From the IMG/VR virus record IMGVR_UViG_3300030085_002431, positions 1 through 64,000 of that record: 64,000 nucleotides of DNA; one strand, written 5' to 3'. Shown in pieces: positions 10,541 through 39,913 of this stretch. Position 1 is the stretch's first letter. Every line of letters begins with the position of its first letter. A model generated the notes under the pieces. It was given only the letters and a program-made list of their open reading frames with translations, searched no databases and had not been told where the DNA came from. The position numbers and the translations under genes are program-made.

Positions 10541-13465
10541 ATGGCAAAGTTAGGGATAAATACTGGTTCCACTCCAAATGATGGTACTGGTGACTCATTA
10601 TTAAGTGGTGCTATTAAAGTTAATTCCAATTTTGATGAAATTTACTCCGCATTAGGAGATGGTTCTACCATAACCAACTCTATTGACTTTGCGGTTATTG
10701 CTGGTTATTCTACAGCATCTGGTATTGCTACCTACGCATCAAATGCTGGTATTGCAACTCTTGCTAATTATGCTACAAGTGCTGGTATTGCTACCAATGC
10801 TTCTACTGCAACTTATGCAGTAAATGCTGGGTTTTCGACTGGAGCAGCAACTGCTGATGGATTAGCAGGTACACCAAACATTACAGTTGGTTTTGTAACT
10901 GCGTCGTACCTTTCTGGAGATGGTGGGAATATAACTGGTATCGTAACTAATCTTACTGCTGGGAATGGTATCTCACTATCAAACAATGGTGGTACAGTTA
11001 ATGTAACTAATAATAAATCGGATGATTATCCATCAAAATGGGTTCAGACTGGCTCTGGAATCCATACAATGGCTAATGTTGGAATTGGAACCACAACTCC
11101 ACTAGCAGATCTACATATTAACAGTTCTCAAGTAAAACTAACTGATAGTAGTTCTATAAATTTAGATGATAATAATGCAATTCATTTTGGTTCAAGTGGT
11201 TCTGGTGACTCTTCACTGTTCTGGGATGGTACAGATTTAATACTAGAGGCATCAACAGGCAAATTTACTGTTAAAGACTCGACTAATAAGATATTTGAAG
11301 CAGTTGGTGGAGAAGGACCAATATTATATTATGACGGAGTTGAAAAACTTCAAGTACAATCAAATACTGTTTCATTTACTTCTGATGTTAATGTTACTGG
11401 TGACATCTATACATCTGGTGTTTGTACTGCAGTTTCTTTTTCTGGACATGGTTCTAATTTAACTGGTATTGTTACATCAATTGTTGCTGGAACAAATGTA
11501 ACTGTAACAAACAATTTTGGAACTTATACCATCAATTCTAGTGGTGGTGCTGTTAGTACTCTTACTGGTCTTACTGATGTAACTCTTACATCTCCTTCTA
11601 ATGGTGATGTTCTAAAATATGATGGTAATGGTTGGATTAACGATACTACTGCTGGTACTTATGGTGATTCTAATGTAGATACACATCTGAATGTTAGTGG
11701 CGCACTTACGGGGCAAATATTAAGTTGGAACGGTTCTGATTATGCCTGGGTAACAGACCAGACTGGTGGAGGTAGTTCATATGCAAACTCTGATGTTGAC
11801 ACACATCTAAATGTTAGTGGTGCTACTTCAGGTCAAATTTTAAGTTGGAATGGTTCGGATTATGCTTGGGTAGCAGACCAGACTGGTGGGGGAGGTTCTT
11901 CAACTCCAGAAATTACATGGACTTTGACAGCAAATGGTTCATCACATTATCAATTTGCTGGTGATGGATTTCCAACTGCTCAAAATGACCCTACATTATA
12001 TCTTGTAAGAGGACAAACTTATAAGTTTGTTAATAATACTGGTGCTCATCCATTTAGAATCCAATCTACTACTGCGGCAACAGGTGGTGGTACACAATAT
12101 AACAGTGGTGTAACAAATCAAGATGCGGGTAATGGGGTTACCTTAACATTTGTCGTGCCAATGGATGCACCTGATACATTGTATTATCAGTGTACATCAC
12201 ACACGTCGATGTTTGGAACAATTAATATTCTGTCAACTAGTAGTGGTGGTGGTTCATATGCAAACTCTGATGTTGACACACATCTGAATGTCAGTGGTGC
12301 ATCCACTGGTGAAATCCTTAGTTGGAATGGTTCTGATTATGCCTGGGTAGCAGACCAGACTGGTGCTTCCTATGCTAATTCGGATGTAGACACGCATTTG
12401 AATGTCAGTGGTGCTACATCAGGTCAAATCCTCATCTGGAATGGTTCTGATTATGATTGGGTATCAGAGGCTGGTATTACGACTTCAAGGATAAATGCTA
12501 ATACTCTGAATGTTACTGGTGTTGTTACTGCCACATCTTTCAATGGTAATCTAGATGCTTCCGATCTTGCTTCTGGAACTATACCTGATGCTAGATTCCC
12601 AGCAACACTTCCAACAGCATCTGGTGCTAATTTAACCAATCTCCCTTCATCACAATTAACAGGTGCCCTTCCTGCTATTGATGGTTCAGCACTTACTAAT
12701 TTACCATCATCTGGAACTCCATCTTACACTGATGTTCAGGTTGTATATGAGTTAACCAGTAATTCTAGTAGTTCAAATGGGTGGAGGATTAATGGAAACG
12801 CATTTACTAATACTACTGATAATCCAGACATATACTTAGTAAGAGGACAAAAATATCGATTCATCAATAATTCGGGTGGTTCGCATCCATTCCGTATACA
12901 AGACTCTGCGACATCAGCATACAACGCAGGTGTAACGAACAATGGAGCAACATCAGGTAACATTGATTTTATCCCCCAAAATGGTGCTCCAACACTATTA
13001 TACTATAATTGCACCAATCATAGTGGTATGCTTGGTAAAATTTATATTATTGGAGAACCAGGAAGAACAGTAAAAAATGCAGAAACTGCATCCATTGCAC
13101 AGGGAGCTTATGATGATATAACAATCCCAACAACAGGTAAAACATTTGCTTTACTTAAGATTCTGATCGGTGACCCTGCATGGGTAATATTGTATACAGA
13201 TGCGGCAAGTAGAACAGCTGATGCTGCAGGGACTGTAAATGGTAGAGCAGAGGGAACAGATCCAGCACCTGGTTCAGGTGTATTGGCAGAAGTGAGTAGC
13301 ACATCTTCGGGTTCGACTACATTTAAAATGACACCAGGATTGATTGGTTGGAATGATGACAGCACACCTGCTGCACAGGTTTATGCAAGAGTTTACAATA
13401 AGAGAGCAACAGCAGGTTCTAACACGGTTCTTGTAGCACTTACAACTGTTAATATAGAGGCATAA
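10541..13465 (+). CDS. mosaic tail-fibre/baseplate-attached fibre protein with two cupredoxin-like domains
   Basis: N-terminal GINTGSTPNDGTGDSLLSGAIKVNSNFDEIY anchor motif; GDGxxLTGIV fibre repeats; four 36-aa repeats; two HPF...CxxHxxM domains. Confidence 0.8.
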   Translation: MAKLGINTGSTPNDGTGDSLLSGAIKVNSNFDEIYSALGDGSTITNSIDFAVIAGYSTASGIATYASNAGIATLANYATSAGIATNASTATYAVNAGFSTGAATADGLAGTPNITVGFVTASYLSGDGGNITGIVTNLTAGNGISLSNNGGTVNVTNNKSDDYPSKWVQTGSGIHTMANVGIGTTTPLADLHINSSQVKLTDSSSINLDDNNAIHFGSSGSGDSSLFWDGTDLILEASTGKFTVKDSTNKIFEAVGGEGPILYYDGVEKLQVQSNTVSFTSDVNVTGDIYTSGVCTAVSFSGHGSNLTGIVTSIVAGTNVTVTNNFGTYTINSSGGAVSTLTGLTDVTLTSPSNGDVLKYDGNGWINDTTAGTYGDSNVDTHLNVSGALTGQILSWNGSDYAWVTDQTGGGSSYANSDVDTHLNVSGATSGQILSWNGSDYAWVADQTGGGGSSTPEITWTLTANGSSHYQFAGDGFPTAQNDPTLYLVRGQTYKFVNNTGAHPFRIQSTTAATGGGTQYNSGVTNQDAGNGVTLTFVVPMDAPDTLYYQCTSHTSMFGTINILSTSSGGGSYANSDVDTHLNVSGASTGEILSWNGSDYAWVADQTGASYANSDVDTHLNVSGATSGQILIWNGSDYDWVSEAGITTSRINANTLNVTGVVTATSFNGNLDASDLASGTIPDARFPATLPTASGANLTNLPSSQLTGALPAIDGSALTNLPSSGTPSYTDVQVVYELTSNSSSSNGWRINGNAFTNTTDNPDIYLVRGQKYRFINNSGGSHPFRIQDSATSAYNAGVTNNGATSGNIDFIPQNGAPTLLYYNCTNHSGMLGKIYIIGEPGRTVKNAETASIAQGAYDDITIPTTGKTFALLKILIGDPAWVILYTDAASRTADAAGTVNGRAEGTDPAPGSGVLAEVSSTSSGSTTFKMTPGLIGWNDDSTPAAQVYARVYNKRATAGSNTVLVALTTVNIEA
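11660..12475 (+). repeat. four coding repeats of about 108 nt (YxxSxVDTHLNVSGAxxGxILxWNGSDYxWV)
   Basis: Copies at 11660-11767, 11780-11887, 12257-12364 and 12371-12475. Confidence 0.92.
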
Positions 13466-16257
13466 TGGCAATTTTATTAGTTAACGTAAAACTAAGAGAC
13501 GGAGTTGACCAAAACTCATTTGTCAGTGAATTTGACTCCGTGTCAGAAGTAACTGTAAAAAATTTATTACCAAATATTCCAAATCTTGTTGTTTTTAATG
13601 TTGAGGAATCATATTTAAGTACACTTAAATCACACCCTTCTGTTGATTTCGCAGAAGAAGAAGAAACGTCATTTCCTGCCGTCACGTATCCATCTCTACC
13701 ATCTGTATATACAATATCTAATAAAACAGTATCTAGTAATAGTTTTATTGGAATAAATGGTAGTAAAGATGGAACAGATTATATTTCGTATCAACACTAT
13801 CTTGATACCGATATAATGCAGGAATTGGGCAACCTTAAAGTAGGTAATGCAGATTCTTCAATATATACAAAAATTGGTCTCAAGAGTTGGACTCATACAC
13901 ATAATGCACCAATACTGTTTACCCAAGCATTAGATGATTCCACAGGTAATTATAATCAACCACAGTGGTTACAAGATTACTATGATGATATTGTAGCAAT
14001 TCCATCTAATGCTACAGCAACTCTCACAACAGTTGCTACTGGTGGACACAATGCATTTGTAAATTCAAATGCAGATGGTGCTACCCTTCAGGCAGCAATT
14101 AGAAATTTTGTAGGTTCAACTAATCCATCTGGAACTATTACAAACAGTCAGATTGGTATTGCTCCTTCAGCAGGTCAAACTTATACTGTAGATGGTACAT
14201 CATATCCAGTTATGGGTAAATTATATGTGCCTACTGGTCTAGCATCCAGTCAAATTGATGTTGTAGTTGTATTTCATGGAACTCAATCTGATGGTGCATC
14301 TGGGGACACCATTGCAACTGCAGCATTTAATATGCTTGACAGATTTGTAGATAATACTGTCACAGACCTCAATATAAGAGATAAGATTGTTTTTTCTGTT
14401 GCATATCCTCAGGATAATATCTCTAACGCAAGAAATTTAAGTGTATCTGGTACTGGTACAGAGACATCAACATTCTTAATGGGAGATAACCTTCCGTATG
14501 CTAGAGCAGCAGTTGGTTGGGTCAAAAACTCTTTGAATAGTTTTATGTCGTCAAACAGCATTAGTAAAACTATTGGAGATGTTTATCTATTTGGTCACTC
14601 TCAAGGTGGTAAACTTGTCAGTAAAATTAACACCTTAGATACTGGCATTGCTGGTGTAATTGCAAATGCACCTGGTCCTATTGAGTTTGAACTAACTTGC
14701 TCAGTAGCAGGAGGATACAGCTGCAATAAAATTGCTGCAATTCATGGCACTGCTACCGCTATTGGTAGGTCTACTTATGATGAAATCACTTCATACCCAA
14801 GTCAAACTTATTCCAGTAGATATACGGGCAAATACGTAGACATTGTTACATTAGAGGGTGGAGGTGGTTTCACTGGAACTACATATCAAGGATATCAAGA
14901 TACTCACCCTGATTTTGATGACCCAGATAATACAGGAACTACAAGATGTGTTCCAATGGATTGGAATGGTTGCTCAGAGACATACAACACTCAAGTGACT
15001 CCCAATAACATGTTTGCTGCTCATGCTATAGGAACTTTGAGTACTGCTGGTGGATTGAATTCTGGATTTGCTAAAAAAGCAAAGCTTTATGCAGCGTATA
15101 CACAAGAAGGTTTAGCAACGGCATGTAATGCTATTATTCATTTTCACAATAATAAGAGTGTAAATTCAACAACAGGACTTAAAGACCCTACAATTGTAAT
15201 CGGTGAGTTTCAATATTTGCGAGATACATTTCAGGGTATAAAAGTTGATGAAATTGCCTCTATTACAGATCCTACTGGAGGGACAACAAATAGACCAGTT
15301 AGTGGATGGGGTTCTGATTTTACTCCATTTACAAGCAGAAATATTTTTCCATATCAAGTACAAGACCCCGATGATAGTTCATGGCACTGGATGGTTACCT
15401 TCCCTGACCAATCTCAATCTAGTGTCGTAAAAACTGCAATCGATTCTCTTTATGATAATGGAATTATTTTCATAACTGCTGCAGGTAACAATGGAGGAAC
15501 ATACGTTAAAGAGAGTGATTCTAGATGGAGTGGAACATATTGTACGACAGACTCAACTTACAAAAGCTATGGTATAACTTATAATAATGGTGTAGCATCT
15601 CCTACTAATGTTTCTGGTGCTAGTAATTGGTTTCCATTTAGAGCTTATGGTCCTCATGGTTTAGATAAGGGAATAGATGTTGCTGCAGGGCAAAATAGTG
15701 AAACTCTTGGTATGATTGAAGGATATAGTAATAGAGGACCAGGTATTGATATTGTTGGAAGAGGAGCAAATACATTTTCTGCCAAGCCAACCAACACCGA
15801 TACTAATGGAAAACAATGGGGAGACTTTTCTGGAACAAGTTGTGCTGCACCAACAGTTGCTGGTAAAGCAGCATGTATGATGGAGGAGTATTATACTCTT
15901 CATGGTGCTTGGCCTAACTTTGCACAAGTTAAAAACATGTTGCAAACTGAGGCAAGAAATGGAAATAATCGTATTATTGATCCAGAATCTACAACTTGGT
16001 CAAATGTTCCAGCAGCATCAAGTAGTAGTATTGAAATCAAGAGTCAATCGGAATATCCGAATGCTGATGCACTTCTTCGTATTCAATCATCAGGAACTAG
16101 TGGAAATGGTGGTTTCCAATTCGCAGAACTTGCGGGTACTCCCAAGTTTTTTGCTTTCTTGGATACAAGAGGGTATTCGAGAGAACAAACCAATGGTAGG
16201 AGACCTACATCAGGTGTGATGTATCCCAGACCAAGGAACGTTAGTGATGTGGAATAA
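13465..16257 (+). CDS. subtilisin-family (S8) protease with N-terminal prodomain and inserted alpha/beta-hydrolase
   Basis: Prodomain ending LKSHPSVDFAEEE; TGKYVDIVTLE; HAIGTLSTAGG (H520); AAGNNG; FSGTSCAAPTVAG (S792). The insert carries VVFHG and FGHSQGG. Confidence 0.85.
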   Translation: MAILLVNVKLRDGVDQNSFVSEFDSVSEVTVKNLLPNIPNLVVFNVEESYLSTLKSHPSVDFAEEEETSFPAVTYPSLPSVYTISNKTVSSNSFIGINGSKDGTDYISYQHYLDTDIMQELGNLKVGNADSSIYTKIGLKSWTHTHNAPILFTQALDDSTGNYNQPQWLQDYYDDIVAIPSNATATLTTVATGGHNAFVNSNADGATLQAAIRNFVGSTNPSGTITNSQIGIAPSAGQTYTVDGTSYPVMGKLYVPTGLASSQIDVVVVFHGTQSDGASGDTIATAAFNMLDRFVDNTVTDLNIRDKIVFSVAYPQDNISNARNLSVSGTGTETSTFLMGDNLPYARAAVGWVKNSLNSFMSSNSISKTIGDVYLFGHSQGGKLVSKINTLDTGIAGVIANAPGPIEFELTCSVAGGYSCNKIAAIHGTATAIGRSTYDEITSYPSQTYSSRYTGKYVDIVTLEGGGGFTGTTYQGYQDTHPDFDDPDNTGTTRCVPMDWNGCSETYNTQVTPNNMFAAHAIGTLSTAGGLNSGFAKKAKLYAAYTQEGLATACNAIIHFHNNKSVNSTTGLKDPTIVIGEFQYLRDTFQGIKVDEIASITDPTGGTTNRPVSGWGSDFTPFTSRNIFPYQVQDPDDSSWHWMVTFPDQSQSSVVKTAIDSLYDNGIIFITAAGNNGGTYVKESDSRWSGTYCTTDSTYKSYGITYNNGVASPTNVSGASNWFPFRAYGPHGLDKGIDVAAGQNSETLGMIEGYSNRGPGIDIVGRGANTFSAKPTNTDTNGKQWGDFSGTSCAAPTVAGKAACMMEEYYTLHGAWPNFAQVKNMLQTEARNGNNRIIDPESTTWSNVPAASSSSIEIKSQSEYPNADALLRIQSSGTSGNGGFQFAELAGTPKFFAFLDTRGYSREQTNGRRPTSGVMYPRPRNVSDVE

Positions 16258-38563: not shown

Positions 38564-39913
38564 ATGGCTAATAAAGGATTCGGTATAAGAGAACTAACAC
38601 TTATTGAAGGTGCTGGAACTCCGAAATTATCAGTACCTCAAAATTTAGATATTGATGCAGTAGTTGTAGGTATCAGCACTGGACTGGTTGTTGGTGGTGC
38701 TGTGACTATTGCTGGACCTCTTGGAGTAGCAACTATAACATCAACGGGTCGAATCACTGCAACAGAAATTAATGCAGAGTATTATTTTACCGAGTCTGCT
38801 GATAATAATTCCGATTATAATATCCCATTCATGGGAGATGCTACTGGTGGTAATAGTTATTCAGCTCTTCAGGTTGACAATAGTGTATTACAATTCAATC
38901 CTGGCACTAATATACTTAAAACCAATAACCTAGAGGCTTTTGGGTATATTGATGCTGGTAATGGATACATAGGTGATGGTTCACAATTAACAGGAATTGT
39001 TACTTCTGTTGTTGCTGGTAGTGACGTTACAGTTTCACAAACAGGTGGAACAGTAACTATTAATTCAACATCTGGTGTTGGATCGGATGCAAGTGTTAAT
39101 ACAACAGGAATTATTACTGCAGCATCTTTTGATTCAACTGGATTTGGTGCTGCAACGATTCGTGTAGCAGTTGGAAATACACTAAACATTGAAGCTCCAA
39201 TTGTTGCTGTTTCTACTGATATGACAGTAGGTGGTTTAGCAACTATACCTAATTTAAGTGTACCAACACTTGCTGATTTGCCAGTAATTGGACCTGGATT
39301 AGGACAAACAACAAGACTTAATGCAAATCAGGTAGCAATTTCAACTAACTGTAGTATTGGTAATGACCTTACCATTGGAGGAAATATAGGTCTAACTGGA
39401 AATATCAATTCAAATGGTGGAACACTGAATATAAATGCCAATGATTTCCGTGTATTTAATAGTGCAGGAACTGTCAAGAAATTTGATGTCACTAATAGTA
39501 GTGGAATTGTTGCAGACGCAGATTTTGATATCAATGGTCAACTAACAGCCAATTCATATAGAACAGCAACTACGGTAGGTGATGGTCAAGATTTGAGTTA
39601 TGGAATAGTTTATAGCATTGCTGCAAATTCTGGTCAATATCGTATATCTGGTCCAGGTGTTGTAAATACTGTTGATGACCCAACATTATACTTACATAGA
39701 GGATTTACATATGTCTTCGTAAACACAGCTGGTGGTAGTCACCCATTCCGCATCCAGTATACAGGAACAAGCACTGGATATGGCAGTACCTATCTAAGTG
39801 GCAACCAAAGTGGCACACAGGTCTTTACAGTGCCCTTTGATGCTCCATCTACTCTTGAATATGAATGTGTATACCATAGCACCATGAAGGGTAGTCTAAT
39901 TATTCCTACTTGA
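38564..39913 (+). CDS. fibre-like protein with C-terminal cupredoxin-like domain
   Basis: GDGSQLTGIVTS and VNTTGIITA fibre motifs; C-terminal DPTLYLHRGFTYVF...SHPFRIQ...LEYECVYHSTMKG. Confidence 0.8.
   Translation: MANKGFGIRELTLIEGAGTPKLSVPQNLDIDAVVVGISTGLVVGGAVTIAGPLGVATITSTGRITATEINAEYYFTESADNNSDYNIPFMGDATGGNSYSALQVDNSVLQFNPGTNILKTNNLEAFGYIDAGNGYIGDGSQLTGIVTSVVAGSDVTVSQTGGTVTINSTSGVGSDASVNTTGIITAASFDSTGFGAATIRVAVGNTLNIEAPIVAVSTDMTVGGLATIPNLSVPTLADLPVIGPGLGQTTRLNANQVAISTNCSIGNDLTIGGNIGLTGNINSNGGTLNINANDFRVFNSAGTVKKFDVTNSSGIVADADFDINGQLTANSYRTATTVGDGQDLSYGIVYSIAANSGQYRISGPGVVNTVDDPTLYLHRGFTYVFVNTAGGSHPFRIQYTGTSTGYGSTYLSGNQSGTQVFTVPFDAPSTLEYECVYHSTMKGSLIIPT

Follow-up and report, generated by a model that had tools for sequence, protein, structure and literature searches.

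A permuted esterase-like domain lies within a subtilase-like gene of an uncultured marine cyanophage

Natural circular permutations of enzymes are usually recognised only from structures of very distant proteins, so how they arise is argued from models. A gene in a 64,000-nt stretch of IMG/VR virus record IMGVR_UViG_3300030085_002431 (positions 1 to 64,000, hereafter the window) raises this question at the sequence level. The original prediction held that a circularly permuted alpha/beta-hydrolase, retaining all of its catalytic elements, had been captured in frame inside a subtilase before its first catalytic strand, for example via a circular intermediate, giving a protein with two serine-hydrolase sites. 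We asked whether the insertion and the permutation are real, and how they may have arisen. The parts of the gene are listed in Table 1.

Table 1. Positions of the gene, its domains and key residues in the window
Feature	Position (nt)	Strand	Residues (aa)	Description
Whole gene	13465..16257	+	930 in total	ATG overlaps the stop of the upstream T4 gp9/gp10-like gene
N-terminal domain	13465..13845	+	1-127	Resembles a subtilase prodomain (I9 / CspB-prodomain type)
Insert	13852..14763	+	130-433	Circularly permuted alpha/beta-hydrolase (esterase-like) domain, 304 aa
Segment A	13852..14112	+		Former C-terminal third: beta7, alphaE, beta8, alphaF
Catalytic acid	13936-13938	+	Asp158	After beta7
Catalytic histidine	14047-14049	+	His195	After beta8
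Junction peptide	14113..14148	+	217-228	GSTNPSGTITNS; joins the old C-terminus to the old N-terminus
Segment B	14149..14763	+		Former N-terminal two-thirds: beta1-beta6
Oxyanion motif	14275-14280	+	His271-Gly272	
Nucleophile	14599-14601	+	Ser379	In the GHSQG elbow
Peptidase_S8 domain	14782..15954	+	~440-830	Subtilase domain
Asp32 position	14854-14856	+	Glu464	
S8 histidine	15022-15024	+	His520	
S8 oxyanion	15487-15489	+	Asn675	
S8 serine	15838-15840	+	Ser792	
C-terminal motif	16201..16236	+		RPTSGVMYPRPR

Alignment with uninterrupted homologues showed that the middle part of the protein is an insertion. About 100 homologue clusters of 623-661 aa carry the N-domain and the S8 domain but have ~12 residues in place of the middle part. 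Residues 1-129 align to positions 1-126 of P0125, one of these uninterrupted homologues, and residues 435-930 align to its positions 139-634, which puts the insert at aa ~130-433/434. The first catalytic strand of the S8 domain is aa 459-464, confirming that the insertion precedes it. The predicted motifs were all found in place: APILFTQALDD at aa 148-158, TVATGGHNAF at 189-198, AAIRNFV at 210-216, GKLYVP at 251-256, VVVVFHG at 266-272, VYLFGHSQGG at 373-382 and GTSCAAP at 790-796. The region originally proposed, nt 13846-14763, equals aa 128-433.

The architecture could in principle be a metagenomic mis-assembly joining a hydrolase gene and a subtilase gene, and unitigs break, and depth rises, at the conserved GHSQGG-coding stretch (nt 14578-14624) in all four metagenome runs examined in this way. 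However, contigs bridge the N-terminal junction in all four of these runs and the C-terminal junction in three of them, with no alternative joints. Moreover, the same architecture occurs in separate clusters at 100%, 88% and 73% identity, on contigs from several metagenome assemblies, and the frame is open throughout. Twenty marine metagenome runs from seven studies hold 48-100% of the 31-mers sampled from the gene. A mis-assembly is thus very improbable.

The insert is circularly permuted. BLASTP against a canonical 285-aa bacterial hydrolase gave two HSPs in swapped order (E 5e-28 and 8e-4). A profile of 20 canonical-order relatives matched aa 128-219 at profile positions 196-280 (E 1e-12) and aa 238-432 at positions 31-197 (E 8e-47). 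More importantly, residues 217-433 followed by 128-216, the rotation proposed originally, gave a single continuous alignment to this profile (positions 31-277, 208 bits, E 6e-66), whereas the native order gave two separate pieces. Along the chain the order is acid, histidine, oxyanion and nucleophile, instead of the canonical oxyanion, nucleophile, acid and histidine. Canonical-order phage relatives are up to 62% identical over the reordered domain.

By contrast, Pfam, NCBIfam and PDB sequence searches with the insert alone gave nothing significant, only sub-threshold hits around the nucleophile elbow, and the domain was placed only through metagenomic homologues. Megablast of the gene against phage genomes found nothing, and a combined alignment of full-length proteins plus esterase pieces was badly misaligned and was discarded. 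The nearest solved or curated sequence relatives of the canonical members of the family are cinnamoyl/feruloyl esterases and hormone-sensitive-lipase-type carboxylesterases (PDB 3pf8 and 2c7b, E 1e-5; sub-threshold hits to Pfam BD-FAE and Abhydrolase_3), which share the GxSxG elbow and the HG oxyanion motif, although the similarity is very distant.

The AlphaFold model of the domain is confident (pLDDT 84.3, pTM 0.88) and predicts an alpha/beta-hydrolase, with a central mostly parallel beta-sheet flanked by helices and with beta7/beta8 first. In this model, Asp158 follows a strand at aa 150-155, His195 follows a strand at aa 185-190, and the nucleophile elbow lies between a strand (aa 369-378) and a helix (aa 380-391). 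All of the 16 Foldseek PDB hits at E<=0.001 are alpha/beta-hydrolases. The best are engineered circularly permuted HaloTag7 proteins (8b6p, 8b6n, 8b6o) and HaloCaMP (6u2m) (E 1e-5, 289-333 aligned columns), ahead of canonical esterases. These proteins are man-made, belong to the haloalkane dehalogenase family (8-10% identity) and match with low TM-scores (0.37-0.47); HaloCaMP also combines the permuted domain with other domains. According to their entry titles they are opened at residues 141-156, which probably lie in the lid/cap between beta6 and beta7. The natural cut of the window's domain therefore appears to fall in the same region, suggesting that the beta6/beta7 lid is a generally permissive place to reopen alpha/beta-hydrolases.

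The catalytic residues are strongly conserved. The Asp and His columns are invariant in 18 type-I, 8 type-II and 1 type-III permuted sequences (types are defined below), and among canonical sequences His is present in 145/145 and Asp in 142/145. Ser is present in every sequence that covers the column. The conserved column is that of Asp158; the original prediction had left the acid as Asp157 or Asp158. A Cys412/Cys420 pair in the lid is also conserved, both Cys being invariant in the canonical alignment. An alternative is that the region is a decayed remnant, the tail of one hydrolase copy followed by the head of another, that acts only as a spacer. The dN/dS of the insert (0.55-0.62) is higher than that of the flanks (0.39-0.43), so constraint is weaker, and the insert has low confidence in a full-length model, which was built from only three insert-bearing sequences and was not informative for the insert. 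Nevertheless, we consider this unlikely, since the dedicated model folds as one compact domain, the reordered sequence aligns end to end with nothing missing, and Ser, Asp, His and the His-Gly motif are kept in all 18 type-I sequences across at least 14 clusters and several host proteins.

The host protein is a subtilase. The S8 domain scores 49.9 bits against Pfam PF00082 (cut-off 21.8), and Foldseek retrieved proteinase K-like and subtilisin structures with TM up to 0.68 on the target. Glu464, His520, Asn675 and Ser792 are invariant in 59-60 family members. However, the profile alignment places YTGKHVDIVTLEGG on subtilisin YTGSNVKVAVIDSG, so that Glu464 sits where subtilisin has Asp32. Thus, the two serine-hydrolase sites of the original prediction hold at sequence level, but the activity of the S8 site is uncertain. 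The N-domain, always found with the S8 domain in ~100 clusters, has a predicted beta-alpha-beta-beta-alpha-beta core (aa 1-66; E3-10, H16-21, E29-34, E41-47, H48-55, E60-65; block pLDDT 78-91 over aa 1-60) plus a conserved extension. Protein-atlas feature hits to Inhibitor_I9 (0.92), CspB_prodomain (0.89), Fervidolysin_NPro-like and Peptidase_S8_N are leads only, and no Pfam, NCBIfam or PDB sequence hit was obtained, nor any meaningful hit with an N-domain profile against PDB sequences.

The gene matches PHROG 15006 'tail fiber protein' (E 2e-113) and lies in the baseplate/tail-fibre gene block of a T4-like cyanomyovirus. T4_gp9_10_N was found in the upstream ORF of the window, and contigs of the 73%-identical orthologue show the same gene order, with T4_gp9_10_N upstream and Baseplate_wedge, Phage-Gp8 and DUF4815 nearby. 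The evidence for a virion location is only indirect. Synechococcus phage S-SCSM1 gp235 (QFG06499.1), from the complete genome of an isolate, is annotated 'tail fiber protein (virion protein)'. It is 62% identical over aa 134-422, has the same junction peptide and is the best BFVD structural match (E 1e-30, TM 0.71), but it is a stand-alone 368-aa protein with a different cut point. Synechococcus phage S-CAM1 'tail fiber protein' (YP_007672920.1) and the 623-661-aa metagenomic family are 43-77% identical, with the same prodomain-like N-domain, S8 domain with Glu/His/Asn/Ser and C-terminal motif, but have no esterase insert.

Relatives show three different cut points. In the window's domain, which is of type I, the cut lies between GDGS and EPY in the lid between beta6 and beta7. 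In S-SCSM1 gp235, which is of type II, profile positions 237-280 are followed by 31-253, so that His comes first and Asp last, and a vestigial extra beta8-like stretch remains. In type III (P0009, a complete ORF), the cut is just before the nucleophile strand. The textbook natural permutation of this fold, Penicillium funiculosum polyhydroxybutyrate depolymerase (PMC3531081; PMC13552848), also keeps its catalytic residues, but there strands beta1-beta4 moved to the C-terminus and the relation is mainly structural (28% identity after reordering; PMC13552848); only the type-III cut resembles that of this enzyme. Here, canonical and permuted forms of one family are 55-62% identical. Literature searches for this family, or for permutation in cyanophage proteins, found nothing relevant.

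Types I and II share a homologous junction peptide, which lies between the end of the alphaF match and the start of the beta1 match. Type I is one clade (support 0.88), sister to type II (0.88). Moreover, types II and III keep a duplicated overlap at their cut points, as truncated tandems do, although the overlaps are short (about 17-20 profile positions) and weakly similar. The type-III junction looks like the C-terminal tail of P0011, a complete canonical gene, joined to the N-terminal extension seen in canonical P0247. These features fit tandem duplication followed by truncation, and a circular intermediate is neither needed nor supported. Fission and re-fusion, or a circular DNA intermediate, acting independently for each cut point, remains a less likely alternative. 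In its favour, no tandem double copy was found among the 95 representative hits or the 171 word-index hits, a bacterial lipoprotein (P0034) has an independent type-II-like permutation outside the phage clade, so the family can permute more than once, and the type-III placement is weakly supported (0.15) and its junction differs.

The cassette was already permuted before it entered this protein, as the same permuted form sits in at least nine other protein clusters with unrelated host proteins. It was also exchanged between orthologues. The flanks of the window gene and of orthologue P0124 are 82% identical (dS 0.22-0.26), but the inserts are 57% identical (dS 0.63), and each insert groups with cassettes from unrelated host proteins (supports 0.95 and 0.90). 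GC and GC3 content do not mark the insert as foreign. The linker is an insertion hot spot, and ~1340-aa relatives carry a second whole subtilase there.

Taken together, we propose, with a probability of roughly 80%, that the gene encodes a virion-associated (baseplate or tail-fibre) multi-enzyme protein of an uncultured marine T4-like cyanomyovirus, wherein an already permuted carboxylesterase-type cassette has been inserted into the variable linker between a prodomain-like N-domain and an S8 domain. The cassette should fold into the ordinary alpha/beta-hydrolase sandwich with an intact Ser-Asp-His triad. Its new ends were neighbours in the canonical chain and should therefore lie side by side, which we infer lets the domain sit in a linker without pulling the host apart. 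The permutation most likely arose in phage structural genes by tandem duplication of a canonical-order domain and loss of the outer parts, with different truncations giving the three cut points, after which the cassette moved by recombination among phage structural proteins. Such a two-enzyme (esterase plus subtilase) module would add to the adsorption apparatus of abundant marine cyanophages, and its swapping between structural proteins bears on host-range evolution.

Enzyme activity is inferred only, and the substrate and role are guessed from distant homology and genome location. The esterase probably removes ester-linked groups (for example O-acetyl or acyl groups) from host cell-surface polymers during adsorption, and the S8 domain either cleaves surface protein or processes the virion protein itself. 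Alternatively, the permuted domain may keep its fold but serve as a receptor-binding module, with the S8 domain likewise a non-catalytic scaffold, in a purely structural protein. Databases annotate relatives only as 'tail fiber protein', Glu464 replaces the canonical Asp and no biochemical data exist. We regard this as improbable, because conservation of every catalytic residue in both domains is hard to explain without catalysis, and the further canonical subtilase in the linker of relatives suggests that enzymatic cargo is selected for.

A second inserted domain offers a parallel. A 98%-identical variant of the gene carries an additional cupredoxin-like insert, also permuted, and S-CAM1 has a cupredoxin-like insert at a site other than that of the esterase. 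This domain is in-line and canonical in the neighbouring gp10-like gene, but permuted when inserted into the S8 domain of the variant and of S-CAM1. We tentatively hypothesize that cyanophage structural proteins may follow a "permute to insert" rule, in which tandem duplication and differential truncation of enzyme or binding domains generate alternative permutants with adjacent ends, and these are the forms that get nested inside other domains. However, canonical-order copies of the esterase domain also sit inside large phage proteins, so permutation is not required for embedding. If the rule holds, the esterase and the cupredoxin-like domain would be two independent instances in one protein family, giving a natural, sequence-resolved series of the duplication-truncation pathway.

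Finally, the C-terminal motif is nearly invariant across the S8 family and occurs only once in the window. A similar GRPQSGQMYPR ends the stand-alone permuted esterase of S-SCSM1 and P0004.

The gene studied here is a single open reading frame whose start codon overlaps the stop of the upstream gene, in an AT-rich window (32-44% G+C) that carries a run of very large genes on one strand. The upstream ORF has a T4 gp9/gp10-like N-terminal domain, and on contigs of a 73%-identical orthologue the same neighbours carry Baseplate_wedge, YHYH, Phage-Gp8 and DUF4815 hits. The only nucleotide-level relatives among sequenced phages are S-CAM1-type Synechococcus myoviruses, at about 74% identity in a few genes. 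These matches lie in the 3' part of the window, which carries carbamoyltransferase and heptose kinase/nucleotidyltransferase-like genes, and the gene itself has no megablast match. Therefore, the source is an uncultured marine T4-like cyanomyovirus, and the gene sits in its baseplate/tail-fibre block.

Every motif of the original prediction was found at the residue number claimed for it, and the predicted coordinates correspond exactly to aa 128-433. Pfam recognizes only Peptidase_S8 in this protein, whereas PHROGs recognizes a 'tail fiber protein' family. A tblastn search against phage genomes split the protein in two, with aa 493-925 matching the S-CAM1 'tail fiber protein' at 43% identity and aa 134-422 matching a different, stand-alone 368-aa 'tail fiber protein (virion protein)' of S-SCSM1 at 62% identity.

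A full-length search identified about 100 clusters of 623-661 aa, which align with aa 1-129 (74% identity) and aa 435-930 (77% identity) of the query and have only about 12 residues in between, showing that the middle part is an insertion. Only three cluster lineages carry this 304-aa part, at 100%/98%, 88% and 73% identity. The N-terminal domain travels with the S8 domain throughout the family and is predicted as beta-alpha-beta-beta-alpha-beta. By language-model features it resembles Inhibitor_I9, CspB prodomain and other subtilase N-terminal prodomains, although no sequence profile reaches significance. The position of the first catalytic strand of the S8 domain confirms the original claim that the insert interrupts the subtilase before this strand.

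Features of the gene, of its surroundings and of related sequences (nucleotide positions are those of the window unless another sequence is named)
Feature	Nucleotides	Strand	Residues	Remark
Whole open reading frame	13465-16257	+		930 aa
N-terminal domain			1-127	
Insert as originally predicted	13846-14763		128-433	predicted alpha/beta-hydrolase
Acid column			Asp158	not Asp157
Histidine column			His195	
Oxyanion motif column			His271-Gly272	
Nucleophile column			Ser379	
Conserved GHSQGG-coding stretch	14578-14624			encodes VYLFGHSQGGKLV
PHROGs 'tail fiber protein' match			492-925	
Pfam Peptidase_S8 match			651-835	
First catalytic strand of the S8 domain			459-464	
Position of subtilisin Asp32	14854-14856		Glu464	
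Other invariant S8 residues			His520, Asn675, Ser792	
Site of the cupredoxin-like insert of P0122	15297			after the matching residue; loose end at 15296 in run X5
In-line cupredoxin-like copies	12047, 12884 and 39740			in the gp10-like gene and in ORF 38564-39913
C-terminal motif	16201-16236			RPxSG(V/Q)MYPR
C-terminal motif of S-SCSM1 gp235	L001 6940-6987			
Carbamoyltransferase and heptose kinase/nucleotidyltransferase-like genes	55000-61000			matches to S-CAM1 genes
Type-I esterase ORF on the contig of P0002	L004 6001-8140			

Searching with the insert alone retrieved bacterial alpha/beta-hydrolases of ~285 aa, many of them lipoproteins with sub-threshold Abhydrolase_3/BD-FAE hits, as well as phage-like proteins with the same domain in canonical order. 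BLASTP against one canonical bacterial member aligned query 262-432 with its residues 57-202 (E 5e-28) and query 134-218 with its residues 207-284 (E 8e-4), demonstrating a swapped order. Moreover, a profile built from 20 canonical-order members (281 positions) hit aa 128-219 at positions 196-280 (E 1e-12) and aa 238-432 at positions 31-197 (E 8e-47). When residues 217-433 were joined to 128-216, as the original prediction had proposed, the sequence gave a single continuous alignment over positions 31-277 (208 bits, E 6e-66), while the native order gave two pieces.

The structural prediction agrees with the sequence evidence. An AlphaFold model of aa 123-445, built with 63 sequences, is confident (pLDDT 84.3, pTM 0.88) and has strands beta7 and beta8 and helices alphaE and alphaF first, followed by beta1-beta6. 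Its best matches in the whole PDB are engineered circularly permuted HaloTag7 proteins and HaloCaMP (E about 1e-5, 289-333 aligned columns), which rank ahead of ordinary esterases that align over only 185-260 columns. The catalytic columns are kept in all 27 permuted and nearly all 145 canonical sequences examined. We infer from these data, without a measured triad geometry, that the domain folds into a normal hydrolase with a working triad.

Mapping of all hits onto the canonical profile revealed that the family is permuted in three different ways. Type I comprises the window, its orthologues and at least nine further 50%-identity clusters, embedded at various positions in proteins of 664-1587 aa, and runs through positions 196-280 and then 31-197. 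Type II comprises S-SCSM1 gp235, five metagenomic clusters and, independently, one bacterial lipoprotein, and runs through positions 237-280 and then 31-253, so that His comes first and Asp last. Type III is represented by the protein P0009, which runs through positions 118-280 and then 30-138, starting just before the nucleophile strand. P0009 is a complete gene, packed between neighbours, with no further hydrolase pieces around it. On the contig of P0002 (L004), a type-I esterase ORF ends abnormally and overlaps a following Collar-domain ORF, which is probably one fused structural gene broken by a frameshift in a polished long-read contig.

Types I and II share a clearly homologous junction peptide between the old C-terminus and the old N-terminus. 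The type-III junction looks like the C-terminal tail of the canonical gene P0011 joined to the N-terminal extension seen in the canonical-order phage protein P0247. Additionally, types II and III keep an overlap of 17-20 positions, present at both ends, with the catalytic residue lost from one copy. In a tree built on sequences rotated into canonical register, type I is one clade (support 0.88) and is sister to type II (0.88), and the canonical-order phage proteins P0247 and P0250 sit just outside. P0247 is 62% identical to the window's domain after rotation. The bacterial type-II-like protein (P0034, 314 aa, with a lipoprotein signal peptide; His helix first, Asp strand last) falls far away, as an independent event. 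This pattern is what tandem duplication followed by different truncations predicts; however, no tandem double copy was found among the hits, and the route is thus inferred. P0064, a bacterial canonical hydrolase of 340 aa, carries an internal tandem duplication of the beta6-lid segment (profile positions ~156-210 repeated almost exactly), which shows that tandem duplication occurs in this family, unless it is an assembly error.

Between the window gene and its orthologue P0124, the flanks are 82% identical (dS 0.22-0.26), whereas the inserts are only 57% identical (dS 0.63). In the tree, the window's insert groups with cassettes from the unrelated host proteins P0241-P0243 (support 0.95, 71-74% identity), and the insert of P0124 groups with P0001, P0002 and P0244 (support 0.90). 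Therefore, the cassette was already permuted when it entered this gene, and it has been replaced or acquired at least twice. G+C and third-position G+C of the insert equal those of the flanks, and dN/dS is 0.55-0.62 in the insert against 0.39-0.43 in the flanks. The same linker holds about 700 extra residues that form a second, complete Peptidase_S8 domain in the relatives P0219, P0221, P0223, P0225 and P0236 (1301-1354 aa), and it is thus an insertion hot spot for enzymatic cargo.

Metagenomic data showed that the architecture is not an assembly artefact. Twenty marine metagenome runs from seven studies contain 48-100% of the gene's sampled words. In the four runs compared with the gene along its length, contigs bridge the N-terminal insert-host junction in all four and the C-terminal junction in three, and no alternative joints were seen. 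Unitigs from these four independent runs break only at the highly conserved GHSQGG-coding stretch, where depth rises and short high-depth unitigs appear, as expected if many related cassettes coexist in the community.

The nearest solved relatives are cinnamoyl esterase and HSL-type carboxylesterases, at E 1e-5, from which we infer that the enzyme is a carboxylic-ester hydrolase. The conserved Cys pair and the lipoprotein signals in bacterial members suggest an extracellular enzyme. The new ends of the domain were adjacent in the canonical chain, where the cut falls between GDGS and EPY, and we infer that they lie together, which would allow insertion into the prodomain-catalytic linker. We hypothesize that on the virion the enzyme modifies host surface polymers during adsorption, while the S8 domain either degrades surface protein or processes the protein itself.

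A natural circular permutation of this fold is known for a fungal PHB depolymerase (PMC3531081, PMC13552848), which has a different cut and low sequence similarity. The window's cut appears to correspond instead to the site that engineers chose for cpHaloTag, given that HaloTag residues 141-156 probably lie in the cap domain. In the literature we could search, no paper described this family, its permutations or the subtilase fusion. What our data add is a well-documented natural series of permutations with multiple cut points, together with nested insertion into a putative phage virion subtilase.

The S8 part is predicted to fold as a subtilase, with invariant His, Asn and Ser residues. However, the whole phage S8 family has an invariant Glu at the position of subtilisin's catalytic Asp32, where YTGKHVDIVTLEGG aligns with YTGSNVKVAVIDSG, and it may represent a Glu-His-Ser subtilase variant. 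A 98%-identical variant of this gene (P0122) carries a 122-aa cupredoxin-like domain, with a His...Cys-x2-His-x2-Met pattern, inserted inside the S8 domain. This insert is itself circularly permuted relative to the in-line copies in the window, in that the Cys-His-Met strand comes first, and the S-CAM1 homologue has a similar permuted insert at another site. Finally, the C-terminal motif is shared by the S8 protein family and by the otherwise unrelated end of the stand-alone permuted esterase of S-SCSM1, and it may be a docking or processing signal.
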